The translations under genes were made by a program, and so were the position numbers. From Eutreptiella sp. 'Long Island Sound 2002' (taxonomy: Eukaryota; Protista; Euglenida), in the NCBI GenBank assembly GCA_964036045.1, contig OZ038378.1:50344001-50408000 (forward strand): 64,000 bases of DNA. Direction: 5' to 3'. The notes below the pieces were generated by a model, which was not told the DNA's origin, made no database searches, and was given only the letters and a program-made list of their open reading frames with translations. Shown one piece after another: positions 22,070 to 64,000 of this stretch; the stretch's first letter is position 1, and each line of letters starts with the position of its first letter.

Positions 22070-22350
22070 ATCAGAAGTGGCCCACAAGTGTGCCGGGTGG
22101 CTACATAACCCATGCAGCCTGGGGTCCCCAACGCTTTAGAGCAGGGGACAGAATCAGAAGTGGCCCACAAGTGGGCCGGGTGGCTACATAACCCCTACCG
22201 CCTGGGGTCACCAACGCTCCAAACCCCGGGACAAAATCCGCAGTGGCCCACAAGTGGGCCGAGTGGCTACCTAACCCCTATCGCCCGGGGGGTCCCCAAG
22301 GCTTCATATCGGGGGCCAAAATCAGCAGTGGCCCACAGGTGGGCACATTG
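22070..22350 (+). repeat. Short dispersed and tandem repeat family (about 88-bp unit, GTGGCCCACAAGTGGGCC...GGGGTCCCCAACGC)
   Basis: Three tandem copies here. Related copies lie at about 14880-15010 (+), 14070-14120 (-) and 28960-29165 (-). Confidence 0.75.
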
Positions 22351-34399: not shown

Positions 34400-34807
34400 A
34401 CAGTTACTTGCACAAAATAGATGGAGGTGACTGCTTCATCACTATTTTTTTTCTGTTGCTTTTTTTTGCTCAACCTCAGCAGAGGACAGAAATTGCTCGT
34501 TGTTTCCAACAATGGGATCATCCAAGAACGGGCAAATGTCCTCACAACTTACCGCAAGATTGTTGCACATTGCAAATGTGGGGGCAGAGGGGTAATCTTG
34601 TGCGGTACACAAATACCCCAACACATCCATGCACGCTATGCGACGCAACTGAAAATCGAAGTGGCGTGCACAAGAATGCAATTGTTGGTACCTGAGGACA
34701 CACCGAATGTGCGAGCGACGTTCAACTGGCATGTCCACTGCACATCCATCTAGGATTGCAAGAAAGTGTGACCAAAATTCAGCACCGTAAGTATCAGACC
34801 CTGCAAC

Positions 34808-36070
34808 TTATGGGTGGGAGGCAAGGCTCACAATATTTTTTTTCGCATACACACCAGCCGCAATGGCTTCAGTGCGGATCATTTGAAAGCGTCTCCTACG
34901 TTGTTGCAGTGCTTTAGCGGCAGGAAGACTGTCATCCTCAAGCAAAAGGAGTGCATCTTTAATGCATGCCTTTTGAACGACACGAGTTTCCACACCATTT
35001 ATCCTGTCGGCCTCATTGTAAGAGGACATACCGGCTGCCCTGAAAGTGGCATTGGTGTAGAGACGCCCGTTGTCCAAGTGTTCAAACGTCAGAGCTAGGC
35101 GGACCTCAGAGTTTCTGGGATTCTGTTCCCATCCACCATCACTGATGAAAGTGATTTTACCACCCTGTTTCTATTCACGGACCTGAGGTTGTGACAGCAC
35201 CAATTGTAGATCATTGATCTGTTGCATGGGGTTGCTACGACGCTCGCTCACCACTCTGGTGACCCCGAAAGGAACTTTTCTGATCTTAAATTCATACTTC
35301 TGCGACACATGAGAAGCAGGTGAACCACATTCCTTGGGCAGGTAAAGCAGCACAGTGTTCCTGACGCATTTCAGTTGGCCTGTTACCACTGTGGCATCAC
35401 TGTACGGTGCAGCTTCATGCAAGCGGGAGCTCATGAATACAAGCAGTTTTGTGAACGTGCTACTATTGAATTCCGAGCATGCATGGTCATCCCATGACAC
35501 ACCAATGCGCCGGCGATGCAGTGCTGTGGTGATGGCACATTTCACCAGTTTGTTTGAAAAATGCCCATCCACGTGCCATTCATCCGAAGCCCTTGCAAAC
35601 TTGCGACGCAGAACAGCTGCAATGGGTTTATGCAGGGCAGCGACGGTGCTACTGCTACGCTGAGCTGCAACACAGTGGCGCACAGTGGCCTCTGAGATCT
35701 TGAAACCATGCCCAATTCGCTCCTCAACAAGGCGCGCAATATTCTGCCACGTGGCAGTGCGTGACCTAACAACTTCCTCGGTGTCCCTCGCCCGACCCAC
35801 AGCACTCTCTTGAAAAACACCAAGATCGTTGGCGGCCTGTTCTATATGGACACCCAGATCAACGTTCAAATGTTCAGCCTGTTTTTTTTTGGAAGGACGC
35901 CCGCCCTTGTGCACAGCAGCAATCATGTCATGCATACCTGCAGACAGACTACGCTTCTGCGGCAACATATTCTGTGCTGCGCTCACATCCCTGGCTGTAG
36001 CCAAATGAAAAAGTTCAACGGCAGCAGTATGCAAGAACGTGGCAGTGACAATGGAATGCGCTGAACGCAC
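34808..36070 (-). pseudogene. Zator-like DDE transposase core, one in-frame TAG at 35171
   Basis: VSWDDHA, FISDGGWEQNP and AAGMSSYNEADR correspond to the SRDDKA / DGGPDENP / APGRSAFNRVERR motifs I recall for Zator/TP36. The frame is continuous across the stop. Confidence 0.7.
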
Positions 36071-39000
36071 ACCTGCTTCGCGCCAATTAAACGTTCTCCG
36101 CTAAAAACTGGTCCCGGTCATGTTATAGAGGATTGATTTCAGCACCCCCTTTGCTACAGCACTGGGAAATGCGCGCAGAAACTGATGCACGGGCAGAGCG
36201 CGCACCTTAGAGCGCAGTACCGCAGCTCCCTGCTGTTCAGCAGCAACCTGTGAAACAAAAGTGAGGAGAGCAGCACGTGCCTCAGCTATCGCAGGGAGTT
36301 GAAACCACAAAACAGTTGGAGCCCCCCCCCTAGCGCACATGAAACATTCTGCCACGTTCTTCAGGTGTAACGTCAGCCATTCACCCATGTGCCCAGGTGA
36401 ATGAAGGTGCCGGCTCTTTGGGGAGCAGCCACCTTCCATATGCAATGCTTGCAAATGAGACTAGCGCACACATACATGCTGTAACAGAGCATCAACACAC
36501 AGCACCAGATGGTGGGCATTTGTCACACTCAAACGCGCAATGTTCGGGAAAGTGTGTGCCACCTTCTGTCTCTTAGGTTTTTTTTATCTGACACCTACTT
36601 CGCAACGTGCGCACGTAGTTCCTGCAGCAGCACGTACAACTGTGTTTCACGCCAAAGGGGGCTGGCACCCACATTCAGGGCCGCATACAAATCCAAAGTG
36701 GCCGGGGCTCTTTGTGCCTCCGAGTCTGTCGATGCCTCCGACATAATGGGAGATGATGGACCAAGGACAGGCTGTGCGTTGGTGAGGGGGGGGCTGAATG
36801 TGGTGTAGTGATTAGTGGTCTACAGTAGCACAGCATGCATTCCAGAGCCATATGACACATCAGGCTTTGCCACAATGTAAAAAACCCCATCCAGATCTTG
36901 CACCACGGTGCGGTACACTCCAAGCAGGTGTCCTAGCCTAACAGCGGTTCGTGGTTCTAAGCCCTGCAAATGAAGGAGTTCCTCCCGCATTGGCACACGT
37001 GGCACCATCACACGGATCATCTGCCTGACAGCGCAAATGCGTACAGCAGCGGCTGCCTCGGGATGCAAAGGAGGTGGGCGCAACAATGGCAGTCCTACAA
37101 AGAACATACCATACAATGCACAATCTGCCATTACCGAAGTTGCTTGAGATGTCCCTTGCACAGTCATAGGCCTACACACTTCATTGACCCCACACGTAGG
37201 TCGTGAAGAGTACACACCAGGAAGCATTGCTGAAATTGCGGTGCGAATGCGTGCAGTCAGACGAGGCAAGGGCGGTGATTCTTTCAAAGATGAAACTTCA
37301 TTGCCTCGGGCAGTATGCAATATGTGATCCAAAGCACCGGTGGCATTAATACCTTGGTCACTAACAATTGACTCTACAAAGGAAACCAGAGTTTCTTCAT
37401 GGGACAGGTACTGTGGGGATGGCTCAGGCAAAAGGCCCATGACATGACAAATGCGTTCCGTAGGGGGGTTGGAGGAACTGGGGCTGCTCCTTGGTGAAGC
37501 AACAAAGCGCTCCAAAGTTGCACTGTTGCAGGCGGGTTGCTGAGGCGGGGGGGGGGGGGGTGAAATAATCACGCAATGTCCTTTTTTTGGGAGTCTCAGA
37601 CCAAGGTTCTGCACCCTCTGCTGTCACTATCTCACCGGCTCATGATAATTTGGTCATTAAAGCGTTCAGCTCACTCAGCCAGTGGCTATCGGCACAGCTC
37701 ACTCAGCCAGTGGCTATCGCCACGTGGGTGTGCATTTTTTTCAATGCGCAAACGCACAGCGCGTTGTGCATCACACGGCAAACCTTTGTGGTGGACAAGC
37801 AGTGCACAACGGGCTGGCCGTAGCATAGATGCCTCCATGCTGGCAACCTGAATTTTCAGCTTCAAAGTACTCAATGCATCTACACTAAAGTTCTTGTCAG
37901 CCAGTTGTTTTTCGACGCTACGGATCAAAGCCCACCGTTGTTGGACATGAAGACTGCTTTCCTTCAAAGGCAAAGAGAAATGCACTTCATAGAAATGCAC
38001 ATGGTCGGAGTTCCAGAATACCTCATATGGGATCCCTGGGCGCGGAAACAGAGTGACTGCTAGAGGAATGACTTCCGACATTCTAAAAGCAAGACATTCC
38101 AAGTGTGAAAAAAGATACTTTTTTTTTAGGCATGGTAATGCATGGGTCACGTTAATCTTTGGTACCGGGTGCAGAATTTGGACCTACCCCAGCAACCCGG
38201 GGTGTGAGTGCGTATTTCGCTTAGCCCACTTTATAACAGGGTTGGGCATCGTGACCCTCAACTGATGAGAGCCCCAGGCATCCCTAGTCATCAGTTTTTT
38301 CTTTTCCCCTGTCTCCCAAGGCAGCCCTTGTTGGGAGGTGCATACACTTGCAAAAGAATGGTAAGTCAAGGCTACCGGTCCCCGGCCTCTAACAAAAAAG
38401 GCCTACTATCCGCTCAACCATTGGCGGGCGTATCATGCCAGCCCACGGCACTCATTGTCGCCGGCAAATTTTCAAACAAAGCTACAGAAATGCCCCTTGT
38501 TAAGGAGCGCGGCACGAACGTCCATTTCTCCAACACCCCCCCTCCTTCGGCGGGCGTTCATGTCACCCCCCCCCCCCCTGCAGAGCAATTTTCAGGTCGC
38601 CCAGGGGTACCAGGGGGGAGGGCCTGAAAGGTGGTCTCAGTGCGCTTTGCAGTGCTATTGCGAATGCAGCATGCTGCATGTTGGTAGTCCCCCGGCCGTC
38701 TATCGGGGGTCAGACATCTCAAAAATGCCCCCCATCTGGAGGTGGACGCCACCCCCATTTGCTCAACAATACCATTGGGGTCTTTGCACAACCAACACTT
38801 AGACCCAGCCTCCCGCATTGCTTGCATTCCCTTCCCATCCCCCGTCAAAATAACAATGCAAGTCAAAAATTGGTTTTGAAAGAGGACAACGTCCTCCTCC
38901 ACATCCCTGTCTTGGTTGGTTGAGGTTGGCGGAGATGTCGAGGCTTCTCAAAAAAGCGTGTTCATCCCCGCCATCCATGCAAAACCATGAGGCCCATAGC

Positions 39001-40549
39001 TTCACCTTCGAAGCACACTTTGCCCCCCCCCCCCCCATACATTGATCCATACATCCGCATCGGTCGAGGATGCCTTCCACAAGAAAGTCGCATCAACTGA
39101 AATGGCAACAATGGCAACGCCACTAGGGGGGGGTATCCCAATAACTCGGGCCATAGATATTGCATTATGCACAATTGACTTCAAAGGCACATGGGCAGCA
39201 ACCCAATTGCGGCCTGTGGTAGACCTTACAATAGTTGCTTGGGAAAGGGCCATTGTAGATTATTTGAGAGCTGAAGCGAAGAGGGGAAACATGGAACAAG
39301 AGAAAATGAAGCGCGATAACCTACGCGATAACTCGCACGATAACTAGTAACTGCGCGATATCTAGCGCGATAACCGCCGCAATAAGTATTGCTCTAGACC
39401 CGTTGTAACTAGTTAGAGCACAAAAAGACCAAATCGCAAAAAGTCCAAAACGGGCAATACCGAGCAAACGAGACATGCAAGGCACATTGTTGCATCATAG
39501 TGCGGCCATGTAACATGCAAAAGTCCGGGTGCCAACCATATTAACAACCCTAAATTGGGGGTGTCCTGCACCACGCCCTAGAACAACGCATCCCAGTCAT
39601 TGCACGTGTGTTTGCCACCAACCTTCACATTTGAGCTGCACACATCTCCCTCCGTTGTCTAGCGGCCCCCTTTCAAACAACGTGCAATGTCCTTGCCAGC
39701 ACGTGGCAAAACGTCTGGCCCATTTGTCTTGGACACAGCTGTTGGGGCGTGCAAACACACACCGTTCCCAAAGATGACTCAAAACATCGGCACCCTTCCC
39801 ACAACAGTCCGCGGCCTAGTTTGCAACGTGGCGGCACATGCCTATCACCTCCGGACCACCGCGTCTGCAATCCTCACATGCTTTGAGCGCTTGCTTGGTC
39901 TACGCTTGTGTTTTCTAGTGGCGATGAAAGCAAAGAAACAAGGCTACAAGAAGAGACACCTGCCCGGTGGCAGCCGGCCTACAAGGCCTATTATATACCC
40001 TCGGGCCTCAAGAGGGCTGACGCCCTTCACAGGTTTGGCCCCTAACCCTTGCACACCGTAAAACAAACATAACCGAAAACCGCAAAAATTCCAGAACACA
40101 ACACTCAACCTCCAGAGCGACAACCACGCCCAGGCAAAATGTCCGGAACACGTGCGACATGCACGGCACATGCAAGTGAAAAACAAAACACCTAGGACAT
40201 GCAGAGCATTGGAGCCACCCTCCAAAAGTGGTTCTACCCTTCCAAACGTGACAATTGAAAAAATTCGACTACACCATTGCAATAGACACCCTCGAAAAGC
40301 CCAAGTTCCACTTTTATCGGTAGAGCGTCGCTGGTATCCTACGTGCCCCCCTAAAACACAGCCTAGGGAGTATAACGCAAGTGAAGTGGTGAAGGTCATG
40401 GCCCAAATGCATTCCACATAATGCAGCGAAACTCCCGCCGTAGTGCATCGTGGCTATGAGCATCCACTTGCATGAACTTGTACCAAATTCGTACAAGGTT
40501 GGTACAAAATTCAGACAAATTTTGTATGATTTCATGTGAACTCTGTTCA

Positions 40550-49600: not shown

Positions 49601-50057
49601 ATCTGTAACAAAGCCTCGCCGTACAGAGCATGCATATATGCAGCATGCTTTCACATAGCACTGATGCATAAAATTGGCTGGCATTTAGCACCAAGCATCA
49701 TGTGAGACCATGGACTTTCCACAATGGGATGCGCTGTTCTAGGGCGTGCTGCGGAACCCCCCCAATTTTGGGGGTTGTTAATATGGTTGGGACCCGGACT
49801 TTCGCATGCTACATGGGTGCACTATGATGCAACAATGTGCCTTGCATGTCTGATTTGCTCAATAATTGCCCGTTTTGCATTTTTTGCGATTTGGTCTTTG
49901 TGTGCTCTAACTCGCGATCACCTAGTTATCGCGTGAGTTATCGCGCTAGTTTTCGCACGATAACTAGCTATCGCGCGAGTTATCGCGTAGGTTATTGCGC
50001 TTCCTTTTCTCTTGTCCCATGTTTCCCCTCTTCGCTTTGGCTCTCAAATACTTTGTA

Positions 50058-50741
50058 ATGGCCCTTGCTGCTGCCCACGCTTGGTGCGAGCACCATCAGA
50101 AACTCCTTGGGATCCGTCACCTTGGCGGACCCGAGGGGCTCACGATGGGTGACACCACTGTGAGGCGCCCTGTGGCGAGTCATTTCGAAAAGGGTGTGGA
50201 CTTTGGACTCATCGTCCATAAGTCCCCCTTCATGACCGACGAGAGGGACCCCCTGCTTCTCAGCAACTACATCTTCGAGTTGCTAGAGGTAAATCCGGGG
50301 GTTGCTGGATTTTTGATCCAGCTTCATCCGGAGGATGTGGACGCCGTGGTGGAGTCCGTCACCGCCCATGCCGAGAAGTGTGCGGGGACGAAGACGACCC
50401 TCTATGCGGGTCAGGAGGAAGAGGAGGAAGTGGAGGAGGAAGTGGAGGAGGTGGAGGAAAAGGGGGGTGGGAGGGGGAAGGACAAGCCCCACCACCCCCT
50501 CATGATTGATGTCCAGAAGGTAAGGATCCGACCTGGTAAGGGGAAGGGGAAGTCCGATGGTTGGTTCCCCCAACCCCTCACCCACAACACCCGGCGGGTC
50601 TGCACTGACGACCCCGAAACCAAGCTCACCATGCACTCCCTTTGCCCCACAAGGGAGTGGGAGCGTGAGTGGTATGGGATCACCACTCCCAACATTGTTT
50701 CGTGGCAGGGGGTGATTCTTTTTTGTTTTTGGAGCAACACC
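50058..50741 (+). pseudogene. B1 dioxygenase gene, part 1 (N-terminal domain), cut by element A
   Basis: LLEVNPGVAGFLIQLHPEDVDAVVESVTAHA aligns with YLEDTPAVPILQVWLHADDVDDVIQACTRRA in the element-A gene. The frame continues exactly at 57474. Confidence 0.75.
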
Positions 50742-50824
50742 TCGGGTGCGTCGCTAGAAGGTGTGCGCAAGAACCCCCCCCTTCTAGCGCCCTTTTTGCA
50801 TGATTACCCAAGCCACACCACCTT

Positions 50825-51144
50825 GGCTCCGATCGGGTTGGAAGTCAACCCCATGGGTCCACTAGACAGTGGCCCATTGTGGAGCGGTGCTCCAAAAGTA
50901 TCGCAACTCTTATGTGTTCAGCAGTATACCTGTGGAACACAGGCATAAGCCTTTCAAACTTGCTTTCAAAAACAGCATGCGTGGGTGGTGCCTTCACCGT
51001 CCACGCATTTCACGACGTGGTCTCACCCATGTATTGAACATGGAGACCCTTGACGTGGGGTTACGACACCGAGCGGCCCGGCAAAGGTTTGCCTTTGGCA
51101 AGGCCACAAAGGACCGAAGAAAAAGGCACTGCATGTACACTTGA
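50825..51144 (+). pseudogene. Element-A transposase C-terminus, flipped by a local inversion (about 50825-51457)
   Basis: GWKSTPWVH*TVAHCGAVLQKYRNSYVFSSIPVEHRHKPFK contains the third catalytic E candidate. The uninverted version is on the minus strand at 60663-60990. Confidence 0.75.
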
Positions 51145-51457
51145 GAAACCGAATTTGAACCGCGTGGATGCATTTGGTGCCCTTCCTGCAAAAATCCTCG
51201 GCGCAGAAACCCCCCCGCAGAAAGGGCGCAGAAATGGGGTTCTAGCGCACAAAGGGTGTGCAGAAAGGGTGCAGAAAGGGGGTTCTAGCGTAGAACGGGG
51301 GGTGCACAAAGGGCGCACAAAGGGTGCAGAAAGGGTGCAGAAAGGGCGCTAGAACCTCCCTCCCAGCAAAAGGGGGGGGGTGTAGAAAATCCGGCAAAAA
51401 GGATAGAAGTGAAAATCAGCCACCAAAAGGGGCGTAAACATGTGGTGAATGGCCCCC

Positions 51458-52803
51458 ACCTGAATGCCTCACCGATTTTACGGCAGTGAGTCTTGGCCTC
51501 TTGCACGTGACCATTGGTCAATGGTGTCTTTTGCCACCACAAGGCATATAGGCTACGCATATAGCGCAGCAACAGTTCAATAAGTGTCCACAAGAGGACA
51601 CCGCCAAACATGGTGTTAGGAAAATGGTTCCTGAGGCCATGTACAATTCGAACATGGTACTTGGGGTCTGTCAGGAACAACATAGAGGTGCTGATATCAA
51701 ATTGCCCTGCCTTAGTGGTCTTTTGGAAAAGCCTGTCTGCAGAAGCCACATGCTTTACATCTGCTCAAAGGGTATACCATATAGACAAACTCACTAGAAA
51801 TTCGCCGCACTCCAACAACACCCGGTGTTAACGTGGTAATAGTTTTTGTTAGGCGCTTCTTGAAAGCATTGGTTACCCTACAACCTGCGTGAGCATAGTC
51901 TCCAATGCGAATACAAACACTTCGAAGAAATGCCCCCCATTCAATTTTGTTTACTGTGCCCTCTATCGGCGCCAAGCCGGTGGCATCGGGGCAGCCCCAC
52001 CAACACTTGCCCCCCCCCCCCCCCTTCGTCACCATCATTAGTTTCCCATCCCTGGTCAGTTTACATTGAAACTTTTTGGTTTCGTTTTTGACTCGGAATG
52101 TACAACTTTCTTGTAGGATGATAATTTGGGCATTGAGGCCCGCATCCTCATCTAAAGCCTGCAACCTTGCGGCGTCATCGGGCCCATCCATGCAAACCCA
52201 CATCACCCATTTGTGGATGTCCCCTGTAGAAGAAAACCCCGAGGCCCAGCAGTTTACAAAAACATCGATCTTAGTGACCGATGTGTACCACAATGACGTT
52301 GCATCGGGGCATATTAAAATCCAAATCTTCTCAGTTTCCACTTCAAGCTCCCCTAGGGTCTCGGCTGTCTTCAACTGCGTAAAAACGAGGTCTTCTAGTG
52401 TTGCTGTCGCTGCGCATCGCCGCTCGATCATGTTGGGGCCATAGATAGCGTAGGTTGTGGTGGAGTACGGTGTTAACCTTGTGCGCGCTTCCGCATGATC
52501 GCGGCAAGTGCATTCACGCGGGAGGGCCAACATCTGCCGTATTGATAACTTCAATCTCCTACCGGTGGCCCATAGTTTGATTGCGCACACGACACAAGGG
52601 TCCTCGTCGTCGTCGTCGTGCCCGGCGAAACAAATGTACAAGCCCCAACCACCCTCAACGACAACTGCCTCCGGATCCACTAAAAGTTCCCGCATGATGG
52701 TCTGTATGTGGTGCCGCCGCTCTGCTCGGGCCTCCCCCTTGATGGCCCTATATGGCTTGAGCTGTGGAATGCTACCCACAAGTGCGGCAACTGCCTTCTC
52801 CAT
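51458..52803 (-). pseudogene. Element-A RAG1/Transib-like DDE transposase (N-terminal and core)
   Basis: ICPDATSLW (D1), LTRDGK (D2), CWWGC, and GDYAH (D-x2-H). A frameshift near 51750 leads into ORF 51285-51749. Confidence 0.75.
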
Positions 52804-53429
52804 GGTTTCTGTGACAAACGGGAAAGGTGTGACCGCTGGAACTCCTGCTGGAACCCCTTGCTAGAACCCCTTTCTGCGCTGGCACTGCTGGAACCCATGC
52901 TGGAACCCCTTCCGGCGCTGGAACCCCCTTCTAGCGGACCCTTCCAGCGAACCCTTCCAGCGCTGGAACCCCTTCTAGCACCCCTTCCAGCACCCCCTTC
53001 CAGCACTGCCCCCCCCCCCCTTGTTTTGCCTTACCCTCTCACTGAGCCCAAGGTACAAACATAGGCACAGTGCAACGTCATGGTCAACACTTTGCAATGT
53101 CGTACAGTGTATTCATGTGTTGCACCCCATGGTACCACCGCCTTCAGTCCAGAATCAAACAGGCTACAATAGTATACCAAAACTTTGAAGGAATGCATGC
53201 ATATAGGGCGTAAATCTTGGTGACGTCCCCAAGGGGTAGGCTATGTGAAGCCTCCCATTCGTGACACCACCTTAGGCACTTCCTGCACATCGCAACTGAT
53301 GTCCGACGCGAGGTAGCACGCAACCCAGGGGCTAAAACCAAAAAAGGTTTCCGTTCAAGGTGGCGCATTGCCGTCGGCACCATCGCAGCGCACCACGTAC
53401 CTGCACATGCACATGCACGTGTTATCTCA

Positions 53430-53625
53430 TGTCCCAACAGGTCTGCTCTGCAGGTCCCAAAAGGTCTGCTCTCTAGGTCCCAACAGGTCTGCTCTCCAAG
53501 TCCCAACAGGTGTGCTCTCCAGGTCCCTACAGGGCTCCTCTCCAGGTCCCAACCGGTCTCATCACCAGGTCCCAACAGGTGCCGACAGGTCTCGTCTCTA
53601 GGTCCCAAAAGGTCTCGTCTCCAGT
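53430..53625. repeat. Tandem repeat of about 22 bp (CAGGTCCCAACAGGTCTGCTCT), about 8 copies, just 3' of the element-A accessory gene
   Basis: Directly visible. Confidence 0.85.
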
Positions 53626-53627
53626 GC

Positions 53628-54635
53628 CTACGCCTTCTTGTAATTGCCCGCCAGCACCGCCAACAGCTGCTCCGCCTGTTGCTTTGCTTCAGCCGTCTTC
53701 GTGTTGCCCTCCACCAGCTGCTTCTTCATGCTCTCATTTTCCAGCTCCAACTCCCTGACCCGTTTCCGCGCGTTGTCCAACTGGGCCTCGGCGTTCGTCC
53801 GTCTCGTGCGCTCCGTGTCAAGTTGCTTGGTCGGCCGGCCAATCAGTGTCTCTGCCTTGCTCTGGGAGGCGTCAGACATCGCCTTTGCCAGTGCCGAAGG
53901 GACGCAATCTCTCAAGGTCACACTCATCTGTTGCGTCAAGGAGTCCTTGCACCACTGTACCACCTCGTCGGCCATAGCCCGAGCGTCAACCATTTGCTGG
54001 GACTGCTCGGACTGCTGGGACTGAGACTGCGATGACTGAGATGCCCGGGTTGTCTTGTCCTTGTCCTTGTCCTTGTCCCTGTCCTTGTCCTTGCGCTGGC
54101 CTTTGTCCTTGCCTTTCTGCTTTCGCTGGTCCTTGGCTTTGTCCTTGCCTTTGTCTTTGTCTTTGTCCTTCGGCTGCTCCTTGTCCTCGGCATCATCGTC
54201 GTCTCCTTCCACCTCAATCGCACCATCAACGTAACTCTCCTTGCGCTCGTTCACCCATGCAGCGCACACCTTCATGACGGACTCCGGGACCTCATCTCCT
54301 CCAACGCCTTGCAGCCCCCGCAGACCATACCACATGCTCCGCCCATCATGCTCATGGTACATCTGGTACGACCAAGATCGGTGCAGCCCTTTTCCAACGC
54401 CAAACATGAACTCAGCTCGCTTCTTGCCTTGCAGACCCTTTACTCGCACCGCAAAAAGGCACACCACCTTCATGCCGCTGGCTGTCGCCACATTGAGCTC
54501 CAGAACCTTGTACCACGGCGTTTGACCAAACTGGAACATGAGCTCTGCCATGGCCCCGGCTTTGCTGCTGCACTCGTTGGCCAAGTCACCTCCTCGCGGG
54601 CCTGCCACGCGACCTACACGCTGTCCACCACACAT
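53628..54635 (-). CDS. Element-A accessory protein: conserved N-terminal domain, KD-rich linker, C-terminal coiled coil
   Basis: 335-aa ORF. HDGRSMWYGLRGLQGVGGDEVPESVMKVCAAWV matches YTGREVWRKLHRGG...KAPQSVCDATATWV in B1. The heptad-like tail is LDNARKRVRELELENESMKKQL. Confidence 0.7.
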   Translation of the reverse strand: MCGGQRVGRVAGPRGGDLANECSSKAGAMAELMFQFGQTPWYKVLELNVATASGMKVVCLFAVRVKGLQGKKRAEFMFGVGKGLHRSWSYQMYHEHDGRSMWYGLRGLQGVGGDEVPESVMKVCAAWVNERKESYVDGAIEVEGDDDDAEDKEQPKDKDKDKGKDKAKDQRKQKGKDKGQRKDKDRDKDKDKDKTTRASQSSQSQSQQSEQSQQMVDARAMADEVVQWCKDSLTQQMSVTLRDCVPSALAKAMSDASQSKAETLIGRPTKQLDTERTRRTNAEAQLDNARKRVRELELENESMKKQLVEGNTKTAEAKQQAEQLLAVLAGNYKKA

Positions 54636-54997
54636 ACTACAGTGCCCCCTCGCGCCTGCGGCCCAGCCACCGACTCGTCCCGCTGTACCAGTTGCGGCCA
54701 GACATCCACTTTAGCCTGAAGAAAGACGAAATGGAGGTGAAACGGGTGATACGATACCTGCTGGAACCCCTGCTACAACCCTTGCTGGAACCCCTTTCTG
54801 CGCTGGAACCCCTAGCTAAAACCGTGCTGGAACGCCCGTTCGAGTGCTAGAACCCCTTCCAGCACCTTTCTGGCACCCTTCCAGCAGAACCTTCCAACGC
54901 TAGAACCCCTTCCAGCGACCCTTTCAGCGACCTTCCAGCACCCCCCCCCCTCCGAGGCCTGTTTTGCCCAAAGCCTTAGCCCCACCAGACTGCCGGC

Positions 54998-57085
54998 TCA
55001 TAATTGTTGGCAAGGGCATCCATACTCCTTCGGGCGCTCAGGGTTGGCCGGCAGAAGCCCCAATTGGACCCGGACAGACGCGTCAACGACGCTCGGGTGG
55101 GTGCAGGCAACATCCCATCGAAGTACTTGGGCGACCGGGGGGTCCGAGGTGTCCTCCACCACTGCCATCCCACCCACCTGGCCTTCACGCACCACGCTGC
55201 GTGGCGATGACGGGGAACTTGCTTGGGGTCGGGGCCTCCAACTCCTCCTCCTCGTGGACAAAGGTACCAAGGGGATAATTTTCGGGGGCGCAGGGTTGGG
55301 CGGACGCGTCGATCACCGGCCTGGTAGAAATCTTTGCCGCCAGCGGCCCTGGGCAATGGGTGGTGTACAGCACCGTCTGGTCCAAGGGCATCATCACCAG
55401 AGCCGCAAACCCGCATAGATCCTCCTCCACGATCTTCTGCTTCCCCAGGTCCTCATCGACTTCCTCTGCTCCCTCGGCCGACATCACCACGGCCTCCACA
55501 GCAGCTCGAGGGGCGGCCTCCACAGCAGGTCCAGGGGCGGCCTCCAAAGCAGGGTCTCCGGAATCCCGGTGACAGTCTTCACAGAGTTGCCCGACATGTA
55601 GAGCACAAAAGGGACGTTCGTCACAGGCGAAACGGTTCGCCGGCGGGTCGGCCTTCACCACGCGGTTGCACTGCGCTTCTTTACAGTGCACGACCTTCGG
55701 GGACGGTGGCGACGGTTGTTGCGCGGGGGCTTCAGCCCAGGGTGGCGGGATGATCGGCCCGGTGGTCTCGTAGTTGACGCGGCATGTGGCAATGGCGGCA
55801 AAGGCGATGATACCGGTTGATCCAGGCGGCACATCTCTCGGGACAGCCCCACCACGGTGAATGATGTACCTGCTCAGGATCTACAGCTCGCCCGCCAGCA
55901 TACTCATCGAGACCTCCTGCCACAGATAGGGAACACCAGAGCCAGAACCGTACAGGAACATGTTCTCGCGGCCGTCCATGGGGCAGTCCACATTCACGGG
56001 CATGAAGCAGGAGAAGGCGTGCTCCACCCAAAGGGTTTGCAACTCCAGCGGCAGATGCCGATGCCATAGTTGTGGCTGATCCAACGTTGCCCGGACATAC
56101 CCAACCTTCACTAAGAACAAACCCGGGTATTTCGTAGAGAGGGCTTGCAGATTGCTTTGCGGCCAAAGTACAACGTGAGGAAGCTGAAGACCTTCTTGAC
56201 CCCCATTACCCGTAGGAATCACCGCGTACACCGCAGCCCTGTCGCCTGGATCAGGTGGCCGGTTTGGGCTTGGCCATGCCAGGTTGAAGATGCCGCCCCA
56301 CCTCTGACCCACGTTGTCCGCCTCGATCTTCATGTTCGCCGGCATGTCACCATCCCTCGCCAGGAAATCGTCCTTGAACACGTGCACCGTCCGACCCAAC
56401 TCCGAGAGTTCCTCGTTCGCTTCCCGGAAGATGTCCACCTGCTACACCGTTTCGCTTGTCCCAATGAGCGGCAAGGCGTGGCACGTGGGGAGGGGCAAGA
56501 CCGCGTCCTCGCTCTCCATCAGCACCGGTGTAGTCAACCCCACGAGCTCCGGCTTCCAACGGTAGGGGGAGTGGCTGGTGAAGGAGTAGTTGGGCAGGGC
56601 CATGGCGGGCTTGCTGTCCACCACGTACCGGAGGGTGTTGAGGTGGGGGTGCTTGAAGGGGTACTTGTCCTTCCCGGCCTTCTTGGTGGTGGGCTTGTGG
56701 GCGGCGAAGAGGAGCGTGGTACCCTCCGTCCCCACATGACGCCGTTGCATATTGTTAACGGTGGGGTTCGCCCTCCTGGTGCAGGCTTGGATGACATCAT
56801 CCACGTCGTCGGCATGCAGCCAGACCTGCAGGATCGGCACAGCGGGGGTGTCCTCCAAGTAACCCTGCAGCCAGTCCCTAAGGGCTCAAGGTGGCTTGTC
56901 GGCGGCGGGGAGGGGGCGCGTGAGGCGGATGCGGGCAATGGTGGTGCCCGAGGGGATCGCCACCTTGGTGTCGGGGTGGGCGGTGAGGTTGGTGCAGCCC
57001 AAGCCATGGGGCCAGCATAGCCCCGAGTGCCCACGGCAGCCCAGGCAGCCTTGGCCCAGTCCACCGAGGGGGCCAACAAAGGCAT
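54998..57085 (-). pseudogene. Element-A multidomain 2OG-Fe(II) dioxygenase-like gene (DSBH domain, Cys/His finger, C-terminal domain)
   Basis: ORFs 56442-56858, 55881-56438 and 55185-55832 share one frame, split by single TAGs. Motifs: QLWHRHLP (HxD position, H in place of D), FSCFMPV, YIIHRGGA (distal His), GIIAFAAI, then CKEAQC...CDERPFCALHVGQLCEDC. Confidence 0.7.
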
Positions 57086-57090
57086 GTGGG

Positions 57091-57280
57091 CTGAAATGCA
57101 AGGGAACAAAGGTGAAACAAAGGTGCTGGAACCCCTGCTGGAACCCCTTGCTGGAACCCCTTTCTGCGCTGGAACCCTCTGCTGCAACCTTGCTGGAACC
57201 CCCTTTCTGCGCTGGAATCCCTGCTAGATCCCCTGCTGGAACCCCCCTTTCTGCGCTGGAACCCCTGCTGGAACCCACCT
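57091..57280 (-). promoter_or_regulatory. GGGTTCCAGC repeat array plus pyrimidine tract and AG acceptor upstream of the element-A dioxygenase; equivalent modules at 54716-54950 and 52809-53010
   Basis: On the sense strand: array, then TTCCCTTGCATTTCAG|CCCACATG. The others read GTCTTTCTTCAG| (54716) and CCCGTTTGTCACAG|AAACCATG (52809). Confidence 0.6.
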
Positions 57281-57473
57281 TTGTGCGCTTTTCATCATTT
57301 TTGGAAAATCAACATCTGTGTGGCCCTTCACAACCTAGGCGTGCTTTGGACTTAGGACACTACAGGAACTCCTACAGTGACTCTTAGGCATTGTAAACGC
57401 GTGCACATCGTGGTTCTAGTGGTACCCAAAAGGGGGGGAGGTTTCTGCGCACACCTTCTACCGACGCACCCCA

Positions 57474-58027
57474 CCCCTCCTTATTGGGGAGGCCGAGGAA
57501 GTGGGTGCGGCAGAGCCCATGGGGGCCTGGAATAGGGATCCAAATGATCTTGTGGTCACCACCGGGGACAAGTTGGTGGTGAACCGCTTGCTGGAGCATT
57601 ATTTTTTGAGTGATGTGCAGCTCGACAGTCTTTTGGGTGATCTTGAGAGGGTGCCTCTCTAAGAGAAGGCAGCCATTTTCAATGAGAACCCCCCCATTGT
57701 GGGCAGGCCACAAGATGAAGGGACCCGCCACACAATGTATGGCAACTATGGGGGGCGCAACCACCATAAGCACAAGCCCCACCAGCTGCACGATCTGCCG
57801 GTGCTCAAAAGGGTCGCAGAGCGTGTGGTTGAGACTGCGAAGAAGAGTGTGGTGGGGCGGGTTGGGTGGAGCAGCACCATTCTTGACATGGCACCAATTT
57901 GAGGCTATGACCACACCCTGCAGCACCACCATCGCGATGCCCCCCCCTACATTGTGCCTGAAGGCACATTGATTGTTAATTGCCTCGTTATGCTCACCCA
58001 TAATCATGAGGCCGATGATGGGTTGCA
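57474..58027 (+). pseudogene. B1 dioxygenase gene, part 2, containing the HxD motif
   Basis: AIFNENPP...GTRHTMY...LQHHHRDAPP...IVNCLVML, with two in-frame stops. It ends at the inversion breakpoint. Confidence 0.72.
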
Positions 58028-58209
58028 TTTTCTTTTTTTGCCCTCCAGCATTTCGGGGTTCCCAGCCTCTTCTCCCCCTCCAGCTCTGCACGGGCCGCCA
58101 CCGGCTTGGGGCCCCGTGCCCGTGCTGCTTCTGCTGCTCCTCCTCCTGCTGCTGCTGCTGCCTCCGCTGCCTCCTTGACGAAGAGAAGCGGGAGCTGCAG
58201 GATTGTGGC

Positions 58210-58410
58210 CTGGGAAGAACAAAAGAAACAAAAAAAACACGCAATAGCTACCGCGATAACTCGCGCGATAACCTAGTTAGAGCGCGACAACACATGCGAT
58301 AACCCCCGCGATAACCCCCGCGATAACTAATTCGAACGCGACAACCCAGCACGATAACTAGTTAGAGCACCCAGCTAGAGCGCGATAACTGCCGCAATAA
58401 CTAGTTAGAG
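58210..58410 (-). promoter_or_regulatory. GTTATCGCG repeat array plus pyrimidine tract and AG acceptor upstream of the B1 accessory gene; same array at 49915-49990, 39310-39420 and 26725-26880
   Basis: On the sense strand: array, then TTTTTGTTTCTTTTGTTCTTCCCAG| at 58210. The array always reads TTATCGCG on the sense strand of the gene that follows. Confidence 0.6.
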
Positions 58411-58442
58411 CAAAGGTTAGAGCAGTGTGTAGTGGGCACTTT

Positions 58443-59313
58443 TCACACCTGGTGACATGGGCACATGCCTTTGCCCGCCTCCTTCTTGGGGTCGTCGAGC
58501 ACCAAGTTCACCCTCCGCAGCCAGACGAAGTCCGTGAGGGCTGCATACTCCTGAACTTGCCTCTACTCCACAACCTGGGCCACCCCCTCGAGCTCAAGGG
58601 GGATCCTTGCCACTCCTCCATACATTCCCTTCCTCACCACCAAAATGGTGCCAGCCGGCACCTTAATCCCAACATGCCCTTGCAAGGTGGGCCACGGTAG
58701 TGCCTCCCCATGGCACACCTTGGCCAAGGGGCACTGATCGGGGTGGCCTGCGACCCCCACCTCCTCAGTCCTGAGGGGGGCAACCACCTCCCTCCCAACC
58801 CTCCACCAAGACAACAAAAAATGCCCGGTGTTTGTTCCCACCGGGAGCAATCATTGACCACATTGCTCAATGTTGACCCCATTGGGGTCCTCCACCAACT
58901 ACTCCTTCTCCCTCCCCTCCGGCTCCTCCCCCTCCTGGCATGGCACACGAAGACCATCTTTGTGTGCGGCACACAAACCCGCCCGCTCGCAGCCGTAGCA
59001 CTTGGCAACAACCTTCCCCCTACACCTAACCGCCCCCTCACATGGCGCTGTCTTGGGACCCCGAGCACCATGTGCCCCTAGCTGGGGCCGCTTAATGGCC
59101 TGGGTGACATGCAGGTTGGAGAACCGCAGGTTAGGGCCTTGGGTTAGCTCAATTGCAAAAAATGCCATGAGGCGAGGATGGGTCACACCAGTTGGCGAGG
59201 CCTTTGGAATGCCCAACACCCGGTGTACATCAAGGGCATTAAAAAAAAAGGCAGTGCCCCTCTTGAATGGCAAAGCCCTCTCGACCCAAGGGTTAGTGCC
59301 GGAGGGGGCAACC
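58443..59313 (-). pseudogene. B1 dioxygenase gene, part 3 (distal His, Arg, Cys/His finger, C-terminal domain), inverted
   Basis: WVERALPFKRGTAFFFNALDVHRVLG...HPRLMAFFAI, CYGCERAGLCAAH and VVRKGMYGG...CPCHQV all align with the element-A gene. Confidence 0.75.
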
Positions 59314-61900
59314 TGGCGGTGGGGGCAGCCGGCGCACGAGGCCTGCCAGATGGGGGGGACCGGATGGTACCGCCAGGTCACCATCACGGGGAAGGAGGGG
59401 GGGTGGAGAGGGAGACCAACTTCACCCTCCCCTCCTATCTGTGGGTTCGGGGTAGACGGCCAAATAGCCGAATCCTGCTGAGGGGGAAATGGTTGCGGCT
59501 TTGTTGTGTTTGTTTGGGATGAGTGCCCCCCCCCCCCCCAAAGGAAAAGTTTTTTTTGTTGAGGCTGTGCTTCATTGATGAAGCATCGGGGGAGTACACT
59601 GGGAGGGAAGTGTGGCGGAAGCTGCACAGGGGGGGGGGGGGGGGGGCATCCACCAGGTTGGGGGGTACAAGGCCCCCCAATCTGTGTGTGATGCAACTGC
59701 CACATGGGTCCAGTCGTATGCGCCTAAGGGGGGAAGTCCCACCAAGCATATGAAGCGGGGGCTGAGCTGGTGGTCGTTGAGCCGGATGCCCCCCCCACCC
59801 CTAAGGGTAAGGCTCCCACCCCCTCCCCCGAGCCGTCGTAGGTGGACAAGGTGGCGGCCTAACCCCCCCCCCCCCCCCAAGGCCCTTGATGTGGGGGCCT
59901 TGGCGGCTAGTGTGGCGACCCACGTGACGGACACTTGCAAGACTTTGGTCGACCAAGCGGCCGCCACGGGGGTGGAGGCCGCCCTGGCCAAGGGTCGGGC
60001 GGCCGACCAAAAGTCGGCCTTGTCGAAGGCCTAGAAGGTCAAGGGCAACACTCAGCGCGCCCTGCACCAGGCCCTCAACTTGGCCACGAAGAGGGGAGAG
60101 GAGCTGGGGACGGTGCGGGGGGGCCTGAAGGAGGCCGAGGAGGGGAGGCAGAAGGCCGAGGTGGACGAGGCCCAGCTGAGGGTGGAGGTGGAGGCGCTGC
60201 GGAGGACTGGGGATGACCTCCAACACGCCTGGGGGTGGCTGGGGCGCAGGTGCGCAGCCTCACCTCCACCCTCAGTGCCACCTTCACCGCCCATTAGGGG
60301 CCGGGTCTGGGGTGCGTCGCTAGAAGGTGTGCGCAAGACCCCTCTTTCTAGCGCCCTTTTTGCATGATTACCCAAGCCACACCACCTTGTGTGGTTGGCA
60401 AGTGGTTTGGGGCCATTCACCACATGTTTACGCCCCTTTTGGTGCCTGATTTTCAGTTTTGTCCGAAACGGTCGGTTTTGCCAGATTTTCTACACCCCCC
60501 CCCTTTTGCTGGAAGGGGGGTTCTAGAACCCTTTCTTCACCCTTTCTGCACCCTGTGTGCGCTGGAACCCCCGTTCTGCACCATTTCTGCGGGGGGGTTT
60601 CTGCGCCAAGGATTTTTGCAAGAAGGGCACCAAATCCATCCACCGGGTTCAAATTTGGTTTCTCAAGCGTACATGCAGTGCCTTTTTCTTCGGTCCTTTG
60701 TGGCCTCGCCAAAGGTAAAGCTTTGCCGTGCCGCTCGGTGTCGTAACCCCACGTCAAGGGCCTCCACGTTCACTACATGGGTGAGACCACGTCGTGAAAC
60801 GCGTGGGCGGCGAAGGCACCACCCACGCATGCTGCTTTTGAAAGCAAGTTTGAAAGGCGTATGCCTATGTTGTGCAGGTATACTGCTGAACACATAAAGG
60901 TTACGATACTTTTGGAGCACCGCTCCACAATAGGCCACTGTCTAGTGGACCCATGGGGTTGACTTCCAACCCAATCGGAGCCATGCCTCACCGATTTTAC
61001 GGCAGTAAGACTTGGCCTCTTGCACGTGACCATTGGTCAATGGTGTGTTTTGCCTCTACAAGGCATATAGGCTACGCATATTGCGCCACAACACTTCGAT
61101 AATAACATTTGGAAATTCGAAATAGCGTGTGGCCCTTCACAACCTAGGCTTGCTTTGGACTTAGGACACTTATGGGAACTCCTACAGTGACTCTTAGGCA
61201 TTGTAAACGCGTGCACATCGTGGTTCTAGTGGTACCCAAAAGGGGGGGGGGGGGTTCTGCGCACACCTTCTAGCGACGCACCCCATTCACCAGGAGTGCA
61301 ATGTCAGGGTAGCCAGAGCAGGAGTGGGAGTCAATGACTGGTGGATTTGCTCAAGGGGTTGCCTAAGGGCATTTTTCGTGGGGAGGAGCGATATGGGGCC
61401 CAAGTGGACATGTGCCACTTCAGCCTAGTGGGAAGCGGAAACCCCAGCCGCTCTGATTTTAGGGCGACCAACATGGCTGCTGCTACCCTGAGGCCTCCCC
61501 TCACCCCCTTGGTTGTGGGGCTGAATGAGTATTGCACTTGGAATGCTCCGCCATGGTTCACATGGTATCCAAGTTGTTTTGCCCCCAAGGGACGGACACC
61601 ATGGGCCTTCACGCCCATTTGCGTGCTGGGGCGCCCATGGCGCTGATTGTGTGTGTGGGGTCTTTCAGGGGGGGAGATTTTGGGTTGAGAGTGGTGGCCT
61701 GCCGAATCCCTCCCTGATGGACAAAAAGCGGCACACACCTGTGAGCAAGAGTAGGGAGGTGGGGGGTCGGGCATGCAAGGCCACGCCCGAAGCCCCGGTG
61801 TTGCTCAACACCCGGGCACTACACACTCCATTGCCATGGGAGGGTGAGCGACGGAGCGTGATTTTTCACAGTGCAGAGGGGTCGCTGCATTGCACGCCTA
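59314..61900 (+). pseudogene. B1 accessory gene remnant, with its N-terminus inverted at 58028-58209 and interrupted by A' at 60308-61285
   Basis: WRWGQPAHEACQMGG matches WRWMEPRSEACRMGT in B3. It has YTGREVWRKLH and a coiled coil (LKEAEEGRQKAEVDEAQLRVEVEALRR). DNA after 61285 matches B3 at 27000-27560. Confidence 0.65.
60308..61285 (-). mobile_element. Internally deleted family-A derivative (A'), 978 bp, both TIRs intact
   Basis: TGGGGTGCGTCGCTAGAAGGTGTGCGCA at both ends. 61128-61285 is nearly identical to 57320-57473. It retains only the transposase C-terminus. Confidence 0.9.
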
Positions 61901-61987
61901 TGTGGCGGTAACAGCTTGTGGGCCTAGGTTTTAGGGTCCTTGCTTCAAAACCCTCCCTCATTTCCCGCCCAGGACCTCTTATTCTTC

Positions 61988-63635
61988 ATGGATGTTGCTG
62001 ATAATGAGGCACTGAGGGCTCTGAATTCCGCTAACCTGCGGCGGTACACCGATTTGCAATGTCCCAAGGTCCCGCGCCGGCGGTTGAAGGCTGTTCCGAG
62101 GCTGGTTCGAATTCTATTGGGGGATCCCAACATTGTGTGTGGCACCAACACCAAAGGAGAAGGTTCTTTGAGTGGCGGGGCGTGCACAGCCATCTATGGC
62201 ACACTTGGTGGCCATCTTGCATTCAAAGCTCAAGAGCATGAGGCCCTGAGCATGCTACGCATGGCATGCAGCATGCATCTTTCCCGGCGTGCGTTTTTGC
62301 GAATGCGCCGCCGTTGTACCCAACGGGACCTAAGGACCATTCAACAACGGATAATGCCCTACTTTCCCCAAGCAACTATTGTAAGGTCTACCACAGGCCG
62401 CAATAGGGCAGCTGCCCATGTGCCTTTGCAGTTAATTGTGCATAATGCGATATATATGGCCCGAGTTGTTGGCAAACCCCCCCCTAGTGGCGTTGCCATT
62501 GTTGTCATTTCAGTTGATGTGACTTCCTTGTGGAAGGCATCCTCTACCCGTGGGGATGTATGGATCAATGTATGGGGGGGGGGGGGGGCAAAGTATGCTT
62601 CGGGGGTGAAGCTATGGGCCTCATGGTTTTGCATGGATGGCGGGGATGAAGAGGCTTTTTTGAGAAGCCTGGACATCTCCGCCAACCTCAACGAAGAAGT
62701 GAGGGATGTGGAGGAGGACCTTTTCCTCTTTCAAAACCAATTTTTGACTTGCATTGTTATTTTGACGGGGGATGGGAACGGGATGCAAGCAATGGGGGCG
62801 GGGGGTCTAAGTGTTGGTTGTGCAAAGACCCCAATGGTATTGTTGAGCAAATGGGGGTGGAGACCACCTCCGGAGGGGGGGCATTTTTGAGATGTGTGAC
62901 CCCCGATAGACGGCCGGGGGACTACCAACATGCGGCATGCCGCATTCTAAGAGGCATTGCAGGGCGCACTGAGACCACCCTTCAGGCCCTCCCCCCTGGT
63001 ACTTGCTAAGGGCCAAGCTCTTGCAGCTTTGCAGGCCTTCAAACAAGCCCTGCAGGAGCCATTCCTATGAGGGAACGTCTCCCCTCGGCCTCAAGGGCCC
63101 GGGGAAAAGGATTTCGATCTCACAAAGAGCAAAGTTTTCCAAACCTCCCTTCCAAAGACAATTTGTGGATCTCCTCAAAGATCATGACCCCACAGTGAGG
63201 AGCCCTTATGGACCTCTATTGTGGGTTGTTGTTCATGTCATGGTAAAATGCATTGAGGGTTGGTATGAGCTTTGGAGGATGAGGGAGATGCACACTCTAA
63301 TCCAAGTGGAACGCCACCGTGCGTTGACCACAAACTTTTCAAAAGCTTGGGGAGACTCGGGTTGGTCCCCCACCAAGTGGATCCATTGGTGCTTGGCACA
63401 TTCCACTTTTTTTGCCGAGAAATGGAGGACTATTTTTCACTTTTCCTCCATCCCAACGGACTATCGGCATGGGCCTTACAAGAGGAGGCTCAAAAATTGT
63501 TTTAAGGGTTGGTCCTTGGTGAGGCCAAATATTTCCCTCCGCCACATGCACCATTGCATGTCCATGAACGCCCTAGAGCAAGGGCTTTTGGGACTAGAGG
63601 CAGGCAAGGCCTCAGACATTGACGAGTTTGTGTGA
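61988..63635 (+). pseudogene. B1 RAG1/Transib-like DDE transposase, frameshifted at about 62795 and about 63000
   Basis: ISVDVTSLW, LTGDGNG, KCWLCK, GDYQHAACR, and PTKWIHWCLAHSTFFAEKWRTIFHFSSIPTDYRH. The last parallels RAG1 [28 protein letters not shown] in spacing. Confidence 0.78.
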
Positions 63636-64000
63636 AGAAAGACCATAAATGCTTAGTGCCAAGTGCTTTGTGTTGTTTGTCCGAGTGAGGGATGGAGGCT
63701 AGATGGGTGTTCCGGAAATTGTGCTCTAACTAGGGGTTCCGCACCACGCCCTAGAACGCTGCATCCCAAAAAAAAGTGCTTTCCGCAACAAAACTTCCGA
63801 ACTGAAATCACACAAACAACATTCTCGGAAAATCAAGGCAACATATATATACCCATCCATGCCCACAAGAAACCATGCCAAGAAGTGACGCTGGTCATAA
63901 TTCGGCAAAATCATTGCACGCCATTTCCTGCTCATTCGTTGCTGGGGTGAGTTAGTGCACTGCAGCGTAAGTCAGACTCGCTCCCTCACGGGCCCAGCCA

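Follow-up and report, generated by a model that had tools for sequence, protein, structure and literature searches.

The question raised by this locus, a 64,000-nucleotide stretch of contig OZ038378.1 (the window, meaning the whole stretch at its full length), is whether it holds a family of DNA transposons that couples a RAG1/Transib-like transposase to a Fe(II)/2-oxoglutarate dioxygenase, as an initial annotation had proposed, and if so, what kinds of transposase and dioxygenase these are and why they travel together. The answer to the first part is that the window contains decayed, nested copies of a real cut-and-paste DNA transposon family, with a full element of about 6.7 kb and three genes on one strand in the order dioxygenase (gene 1), accessory coiled-coil protein (gene 2) and transposase (gene 3). 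For the remainder, the transposase has the RAG1/Transib-like layout of the CACTA-Mirage-Chapaev-Transib (CMCT) assemblage and is accompanied by a PhyH-type dioxygenase and a coiled-coil protein, and we think the explanation as a whole, with the mechanism proposed below, probable.

Two principal elements, A (50742-57473) and B1 (49725-63768), lie at essentially the positions first assigned to them, are bounded by terminal inverted repeats (TIRs) of about 36 bp, and have the gene order given above in common. Self-comparison of the window with blastn recovers the three partial copies that had also been noted (A', B2 and B3), and places both A and A' within B1. The features are as follows, in order of position.

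26145-27544 (approximate ends), minus strand: B2, a diverged B-like fragment of the transposase region, 65-75% identical in nucleotide sequence to B1 61320-62511.
32839-39595, minus strand: B3, a deletion derivative of B (left 342 bp joined to right 1.4 kb) with the same ends as B1, made up of 38607-39595 and 32839-33379 and split by a 5.2-kb insertion at 33380-38606.
49725-49760, plus strand: left TIR of B1 (TGGGATGCG...GGAACCCC), the reverse complement of 63733-63768; it matches the B3 ends, and the flanking 2 bp are AA on both sides.
49968-50741, plus strand: N-terminal part of B1 gene 1, truncated by the A insertion; the frame resumes at 57474 once A is removed, and GITTPN and PLLIGE align with A and C (a third lineage, below).
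50742-50777, plus strand: left TIR of A, at the transposase side, with one mismatch to the A consensus TIR; the same end is found in A' (60308) and in L002 and L004 (A copies outside the window, below).
50824-51456, plus strand: segment inverted in A only, with the C-terminal transposase region including the catalytic E motif (SSIPVEHRH) and a repeat array; opposite orientation in A', L002 and L004.
51464-52818, minus strand: N-terminal and core part of the A transposase, a 363-amino-acid open reading frame (ORF) at 51712-52803 followed by a frameshift, with the first D (CPDATSLW), the second D (TRDGK) and the Cys pair; relatives are 100 to 40% identical.
52835-53030, plus strand: GCT(A/G)GAACCC array upstream of the A transposase gene; A has 21 occurrences of the motif, the rest of the window none.
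53631-54710, minus strand: A gene 2, the accessory protein (globular domain, acidic/basic linker, coiled coil), matching C-lineage gene 2 over 333 amino acids (BLASTP E 4e-20), with no Pfam family.
54728-54968, plus strand: GCT(A/G)GAACCC array between genes 1 and 2 of A, from the motif count.
55188-56885, minus strand: A gene 1, a decayed multidomain PhyH-type dioxygenase in a single frame with two stops, aligned to intact A- and C-lineage proteins and about 79% identical to L002 over 389 amino acids.
57093-57289, plus strand: GCT(A/G)GAACCC array upstream of A gene 1, from the motif count.
57438-57473, minus strand: right TIR of A, at the gene 1 side; the flanking 2 bp are CC on both sides.
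57474-58027, plus strand: middle part of B1 gene 1, recognised by alignment, with an HHHRD iron-binding motif and two in-frame stops.
58028-59313 (approximate boundaries), minus strand: inverted segment of B1 with the distal His/Arg half of the dioxygenase (BLASTP E 2e-5), the Cys cluster and the C-terminal domain.
59400-60306, plus strand: coiled-coil end of B1 gene 2, decayed and cut by A'; the similarity is at motif level only, and its position between gene 1 and the transposase fits.
60308-61285, plus strand: A', an internally deleted non-autonomous A copy (blastn, shared ends).
61940-63635, plus strand: B1 transposase (ORFs 61940-62890 and 63003-63635), aligned with A and C, with D for E as the last catalytic residue (SSIPTDYRH).
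63733-63768, minus strand: right TIR of B1, the inverted repeat of the left end.

The ends of A and A' are 92-94% identical by blastn, and in A' position ~51583 is joined straight to ~57300, so that it is an internal-deletion copy; excision of A and A' in silico restores the reading frames of B1. Two private inversions, both of them proposed at the outset, are present among the window copies, one in A and one in B1. The first (50824-51456) is seen in window A alone, the other orientation being found in A', L002 and L004, and the second (~58028-59313) is recognised from the match of its minus strand to an intact A-lineage dioxygenase, its boundaries being approximate and set by coding logic alone. 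None of the window copies is intact and all are dead; the A transposase has decayed through a frameshift in addition to its inversion, and B1 is broken up by A and A'. The surrounding DNA is repeat-rich and eukaryote-like, with 48-61% G+C. The 5.2-kb insertion in B3 contains minus-strand ORFs of 299 amino acids (35171-36070) and 264 amino acids (36820-37614) with no Pfam match, and is possibly another unclassified element.

Copies outside the window provide intact genes for comparison. In the protein collection 66 relatives of the A transposase ORF are present, all but one (65/66) from ENA, and the five contigs fetched for these relatives are all megabase contigs of one assembly (ERZ25074135). 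Two of them (L002 and L004) are further A copies, 83-92% identical to window A, and the other three (L001, L003 and L005) represent the third lineage, C, whose transposase is 43-48% identical to that of A. L005:8975-15702 is a nearly intact C element with all three genes: gene 1 at 9422-11845 (one in-frame stop), gene 2 at ~11845-12900, and a 549-amino-acid transposase ORF at 13593-15242. The three-gene order is the same in A (the window, L002 and L004), B1, and C (L001 and L005), and L003 is a C deletion copy that has lost gene 2 and half of gene 1 and has an intact transposase ORF. We note that the L003 element lies inside a LINE-like (long interspersed nuclear element) retroelement, with reverse transcriptase-like ORFs on one side and a zf-RVT match (E 1.1e-5, just under the cut-off) on the other (5177-7393, 12477-13250). 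L001 carries, at 296-14291, a tandem duplication of the C element with 2.2 kb of its flank (98% identity between 1528-5434 and 10384-14291), and the full copy has a left TIR lacking its outer 12 bp and is not a normal insertion; in L004 a 3.5-kb insertion (6423-9939) in gene 1 contains an 831-amino-acid ORF (6678-9173) with no Pfam match.

A more distant relative, L006, comes from another metagenome (ERZ27267618), and its transposase is 35% identical to that of C (E 4e-106). A same-strand ORF following the transposase matches PhyH over nearly the whole model, and aligns with C gene 1 over 450 amino acids (E 4e-27); the alignment takes in GLTTPT near the N-terminus, WHRD, IHRGGGVP, PPWA and the Cys cluster. 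A transposase tree rooted at its midpoint groups A with C as sisters (99/98 support) and has its deepest split between them and L006, so that cargo-bearing lineages are found on both sides of it. Because a relative this distant carries a homologous dioxygenase, the linkage appears to be old, and the proposal of an old, conserved association holds for A, B, C and L006; from these comparisons, dioxygenase cargo would be old yet not universal in the family, and its order likewise not universal.

Gene 1 encodes a protein of about 700 amino acids with a PhyH-type Fe(II)/2-oxoglutarate dioxygenase core (HRD...H...R), a Cys-rich cluster that is probably zinc-binding, and a C-terminal domain. Matches to PhyH (PF05721) score 25.4 bits for L003, 22.4 for L005 and 27.9 for the L006 relative, against a curated cut-off of 22. 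Intact proteins of the A (P0119) and C (P0109) lineages contain WHRD, then some 70 residues on (I/L)H(R/T)GGAVP, and then an Arg in (T/P)RIIAF, together with a PPW motif, a C/H-rich cluster and a conserved C-terminal domain; the HRD, distal H and R are intact in these and in the L006-lineage protein, which are only 25-35% identical. In window A, gene 1 has in-frame stops at 56442-56444 and 55881-55883, HRD has become HRH and the 2-oxoglutarate-binding Arg has become Gly, while B1 retains HRD on the plus strand and the His and Arg on the minus strand within the inverted segment. The best match in profile searches of the PDB is insignificant (9wyc_A, E 0.59), with the same WHRD...HRGG pattern, and Foldseek gives no fold match for the dioxygenase model, which has a predicted local distance difference test score (pLDDT) of 29.7. 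No close cellular relative was found, and the protein differs from other members of PhyH, whose HxD...H...R core it shares and whose Pfam cut-off three copies equal or exceed, in being much longer, multidomain (N-terminal domain, Cys cluster, C-terminal domain) and transposon-encoded.

The initial annotation had likened this cargo to the TET/JBP enzymes that make base J or oxidize 5-methylcytosine. A TET/JBP identity is ruled out, there being no match to TET_JBP (PF12851) at any threshold, even at E values up to 10; the sequence points instead to a PhyH-type enzyme. The description of it as DNA- or chromatin-modifying is unsupported, and the PhyH affiliation leaves a wide choice of candidates, which may be protein, small molecule or nucleic acid.

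Is the dioxygenase of any use to the element? Between two A copies the ratio of nonsynonymous to synonymous substitution rates (dN/dS) comes to 0.45 in gene 1, 0.48 in gene 2 and 0.47 in the transposase, suggesting that all three were constrained to a similar degree during the active life of the lineage. Capture of host fragments is common among DNA transposons of this clade, and the dioxygenase could be a host gene taken up passively (as happens in Pack-MULE and CACTA elements) with no role, its spread reflecting descent from one capture. In favour of this, all window copies of the gene are dead, and the TET/JBP genes of fungi have moved between transposon lineages 'passively' (PMC12730594). 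Against this, strongly diverged dioxygenases still have the HRD, H and R residues together with the multidomain layout; gene 1 has a dN/dS far under 1 that matches the value for the transposase; and it is a full-length gene preceded by an array of its own, with nothing to mark it as a fragment. We therefore regard a mere passenger as very improbable.

What kind of transposon is this? The termini are TGGGG...CCCCA across lineages A, B and C, with TIRs of about 36 bp that begin 5'-TGGGGTGCG and end GAACCCC, and related forms in each lineage: TGGGGTGCGTCGCTAGAAGG...GAACCCC in A, TGGGGTGCGCCGCTGGAAGC...GGAACCCC in C, and TGGGATGCGCTGTTCTAGGG...GGAACCCC in B. Target-site duplications (TSDs) were tallied by hand over the eight copies with both ends, the bases being taken outside the T...A termini. 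The flanking dinucleotides are identical in five of the eight (TG, TG, AA, AA and CC), a result with a chance probability of ~5e-5 by our own binomial estimate, and the first base is alike in the other three. In addition, the A copy at L002:1921-11875 sits inside another A copy, and the uninterrupted site is kept in window A and L004; comparison of the empty site, GGTGATGGCGGG, with the filled site, GATG[element]TGGTAGG, reveals a TG duplication. The matching flanks and the empty and filled sites together indicate that the family makes 2-bp duplications and not the 5-bp duplications of Transib. Two other models, one with a duplication of 3 bp (ATG) and one with termini that lack the outer T/A, were rejected against the eight copies and the empty site.

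Transib elements have 5-bp duplications and termini of the form 5'-CAC...GTG-3' that resemble recombination signal sequences (PMC4411706; Kapitonov and Jurka 2005). Because this family has a 2-bp TSD and termini reading TGGGG...CCCCA (TGGGGTGCG or TGGGATGCG at the left, CCCCA at the right), it is not a canonical Transib, and the initial assignment to a RAG1/Transib-like transposase stands for the motif layout of the transposase and falls for membership of Transib in the strict sense. The 2-bp duplication is within the 2-5 bp range of the CMCT clade as a whole (PMC12730594).

A RAG1/Transib-type core is suggested by motif layout and by structure comparison. Gene 3 encodes a DDE transposase of about 545 amino acids, arranged as D, ~85 residues, D, 12 residues, C-x2-C, ~190 residues, H-x4-H, 19 residues, E. 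An alignment of 16 diverse proteins that are 31-51% identical (P0068 numbering) places D168 in (P/A)DATPLW, an invariant GDGK (D253), a near-invariant C266-x2-C269, an invariant G301-D302-x2-H305, and H462-x4-H467 followed 19 residues on by an invariant FSSxPxE (E487). This is the RAG1/CMCT layout, including the clade signature of C-x2-C and H-x4-H followed by E. The C-x2-C and H-x4-H-x19-E spacings equal those of mouse RAG1 (C727/C730, H937/H942 and E962). AlphaFold2 models were built from shallow in-genome alignments, and when the transposase model (pLDDT 43) was compared by Foldseek with 350,542 PDB chains the top 43 matches were all RAG1, HzTransib or BbRAGL, with Hermes next; the best E was 5.6e-4 and the probability up to 0.96, with TM-scores of only ~0.15-0.21. 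We read this low-confidence comparison as support for a RAG1/Transib-type core.

The transposase has no match in Pfam, NCBIfam, or phmmer and profile searches of PDB sequences, and the Pfam KDZ, Plavaka and CACTA (Transposase_21) models match none of the transposases scanned. An exhaustive HMMER search returned 695 cluster representatives (50% identity clusters), 423 of them at E below 1e-10, many being full length and on 2-5 kb contigs of aquatic metagenomes, while a scan of JGI metagenomes for relatives gave two short loci only. The transposase family thus appears to be large, unnamed and without a Pfam model, and the suggestion that it is undescribed is supported in that no paper in the literature searched describes it.

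The likeness to RAG1 and Transib may nevertheless be superficial, the transposase belonging on the CACTA/Mirage side with no special relation to RAG1. Mirage elements have a 2-bp TSD and CACTA elements have subterminal repeats, and the 2-bp TSD and subterminal arrays seen here are more like these than like Transib; HMMER finds no match to RAG1 or HzTransib, and all branches of the CMCT assemblage share the C-x2-C and H-x(3-4)-H signature (PMC12730594). The spacings that coincide with those of mouse RAG1 argue the other way, as does the selection by Foldseek of only RAG1/Transib-family chains ahead of hAT, and the Pfam CACTA model is unmatched too. A CACTA/Mirage placement is therefore a serious possibility, if not the one that we would choose.

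Gene 2 and the repeat arrays bear on how the three genes might work together. Globular part, acidic/basic linker and coiled coil are common to the A and C versions of gene 2; B against C gives only E 0.44, and the B version is recognisable by position and short motifs only. Homology of all three proteins between A and B at the level of motifs, as first described, is clear for the transposases (by tblastx and by alignment), extends to the dioxygenases of A, B and C, which align including the HRD motif, and for the accessory protein is at the motif level. A short unit, GCTGGAACCC, is arrayed ahead of each gene and is also the inner part of the TIR. The unit GCT(A/G)GAACCC, which forms the inner portion of the TIR in C, is found 26 times in the L005 element and clusters, as in A, at both element ends and before each gene; it is absent from 15 kb of DNA flanking the L005 element, from the remaining 49.7 kb of the window and from the B-only parts, and B carries different arrays. 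A separate 23-bp tandem repeat (GTCCCAACAGGTCTGCTCTCCAG) lies at 53431-53614, between gene 2 and the transposase array of A, and is also present in L004. L002:11881-12304 contains the same repeat just outside the inner A copy, where it belongs to the outer A; it is at the same A position and is not a separate site.

These arrays raise the alternative that genes 1 and 2 are cofactors of transposition and not anti-silencing cargo. Gene 2 would then bind the GCTGGAACCC arrays and join the ends, as do TnpA of En/Spm or the Myb-like partner of PIF/Harbinger, and the target of gene 1 would be the transposase or synaptic complex, in a partnership a little like that of RAG2 with RAG1. The similar dN/dS values of the three genes would fit, as would the motif shared by the TIR and the arrays, their presence before every gene and at both ends, the recurrence of a homologous dioxygenase beside the distant L006 transposase, and the Cys-rich cluster and extra domains of the dioxygenase, which suit macromolecular contacts. 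Several transposase lineages seem to lack either gene on their contigs, though, so that the transposase probably functions by itself; in L003 the transposase ORF is intact although gene 2 and half of gene 1 are gone, and we know of no DDE transposase that needs an oxygenase. We consider a purely cofactor role unlikely.

Returning to the reading that we favour, of a RAG1/Transib-like transposon with a catalytically useful dioxygenase as cargo, the transposase would excise and integrate the element by a RAG1/Transib-like mechanism, and the arrays would be binding sites for the transposase or the gene 2 protein (as with CACTA subterminal repeats and TnpA), or promoters for each gene. The dioxygenase would be kept because its catalytic activity helps the element; most likely, oxidation of a target belonging to the host or bound to the element would counteract silencing, as the analogy with the TET/JBP genes of fungal transposons suggests. 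On this analogy we would rank anti-silencing first among its possible roles, and a direct cofactor function second.

Several observations weigh against this reading. The window dioxygenase pieces and ORFs give no Pfam match, the dioxygenase family having become visible because intact copies were found outside the window. PhyH-family enzymes are mostly small-molecule or protein hydroxylases. No dioxygenase is present within ~1-2 kb of the transposase in three other lineages (L007, L008-L013 and L017) on short metagenome contigs, and L006 has the order transposase then dioxygenase. Both AlphaFold models are poor (pLDDT 43 and 30), and the fold match rests on local 3Di/sequence similarity. Foldseek cannot tell which CMCT branch is nearest, or rank Transib against CACTA, Mirage and Chapaev, because the PDB, to our knowledge, contains no structures for these last three. 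The family HMMER profile does not reach the RAG1 or HzTransib sequences among the PDB chains, and the TGGGG...CCCCA termini depart from the 5'-CA...TG-3' usual for the CMCT clade.

KDZ elements with TET/JBP genes were reportedly described by Iyer and colleagues in 2014. TET/JBP dioxygenases are carried by eleven lineages of fungal DNA transposons, including the CMCT members EnSpm, Plavaka and ESTA (Kojima 2025, PMC12730594), and have been passed between these lineages 'passively' (PMC12730594). ESTA, from rust fungi, has TET/JBP cargo and a transposase that resembles RAG1 by HHpred (PMC12730594), and is thus a precedent for dioxygenase cargo in a RAG-like element, for which the initial annotation had named no case. 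Like the fungal elements, which also include KDZ, the family described here is of the cut-and-paste type with a Fe(II)/2-oxoglutarate dioxygenase inside the TIRs beside the transposase, some of the fungal elements also having a third gene, and with ESTA it shares a RAG1-like transposase and 2-bp duplications. The duplications of ESTA are always of TA, against TG, AA and CC in this family, which differs from the fungal elements generally in its PhyH-type cargo, its TGGGG...CCCCA termini, its apparent host (an aquatic, non-fungal eukaryote), and a cargo association that appears old within the transposase family and not recently exchanged.

With Transib, ProtoRAG (which carries a second, RAG2-like gene) and RAG1 the family shares the DDE layout and a zinc site formed by C-x2-C, which follows the second D, and by H-x4-H, which precedes E by 19 residues; RAG1 and its Transib relatives are also the only family among the top PDB matches in Foldseek. 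It differs from Transib and RAG1 in its 2-bp duplications, TGGGG ends and lack of a sequence-level match to RAG1 or HzTransib, and in a shorter transposase (~545 amino acids) with no Chapa or RING domain. En/Spm has the gene products TnpA and TnpD, and with CACTA (En/Spm) and Mirage the family has in common the clade signature, short duplications (2-3 bp), subterminal repeat arrays and more than one gene product; it is distinguished by the absence of CACTA termini and of a Pfam CACTA match, by arrays that also lie between genes, and by the dioxygenase gene. Lanisha, from the moss Ceratodon (PMC8245031, GenBank MT647524), has an EnSpm-like placement.

Transposon-borne dioxygenases were known before only as fungal TET/JBP enzymes, thought to undo methylation-based silencing, and no PhyH-type enzyme linked to a DNA transposon was found in the literature searched. 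New here is a different class of dioxygenase carried by a different, apparently large family of RAG1-like transposases. The diversity of the RAG1/Transib core is widened by a family with 2-bp duplications, new termini, 695 clusters at 50% identity and no Pfam model. A selfish element appears to have long kept an enzyme, and nearly intact copies such as L005:8975-15702 make experiments possible. A bolder version, which we find doubtful, is that this is an unnamed branch of the RAG1/Transib-CACTA assemblage at the superfamily level, widespread in aquatic microbial eukaryotes, that has carried the cargo since near its origin, with a dioxygenase acting on chromatin, DNA or the silencing machinery; such enzymes would form, beside TET/JBP, another and independent class of oxidative 'anti-silencing' proteins borne by transposons.

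Elsewhere in the window, an Rfam scan detected no RNA gene, and the only recognisable host gene seen is a minus-strand ORF at 16001-16783 with an ESCO1/2 acetyltransferase domain (PF13880, E 8.5e-29), from which we conclude that the DNA is eukaryotic. The left end (1-7000, and 7543-8460) is a satellite of 419-bp units with G+C up to 76% and blocks in both orientations; those at 4727-5446 and 5841-6560 are 94% complementary, and a 453-bp repeat adjoins the satellite. A 74-83-bp unit, perhaps a small mobile or satellite unit, occurs once at 14914-14987 and as a 3.3-copy tandem at 22069-22362, the copies being 81-89% identical. Satellites of 10-bp units (GGAAAACGGG, GAATTATGGG and their complements) lie at 17028-17144, 17741-17832, 19434-19703 and 21068-21817, of which the last two are mutually inverted and bracket a 402-amino-acid ORF on the minus strand (19694-20902) that has no Pfam match. 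On the metagenome contig L008 (2692-2831) a similar satellite, GGGGGAAAAT, is present beside a related transposase. On the same contig, a hAT-family dimerisation domain (L008:3279-4010; PF05699, E 4.8e-13) adjoins this transposase-only relative, suggesting that the same host, or a related one, also harbours hAT elements.

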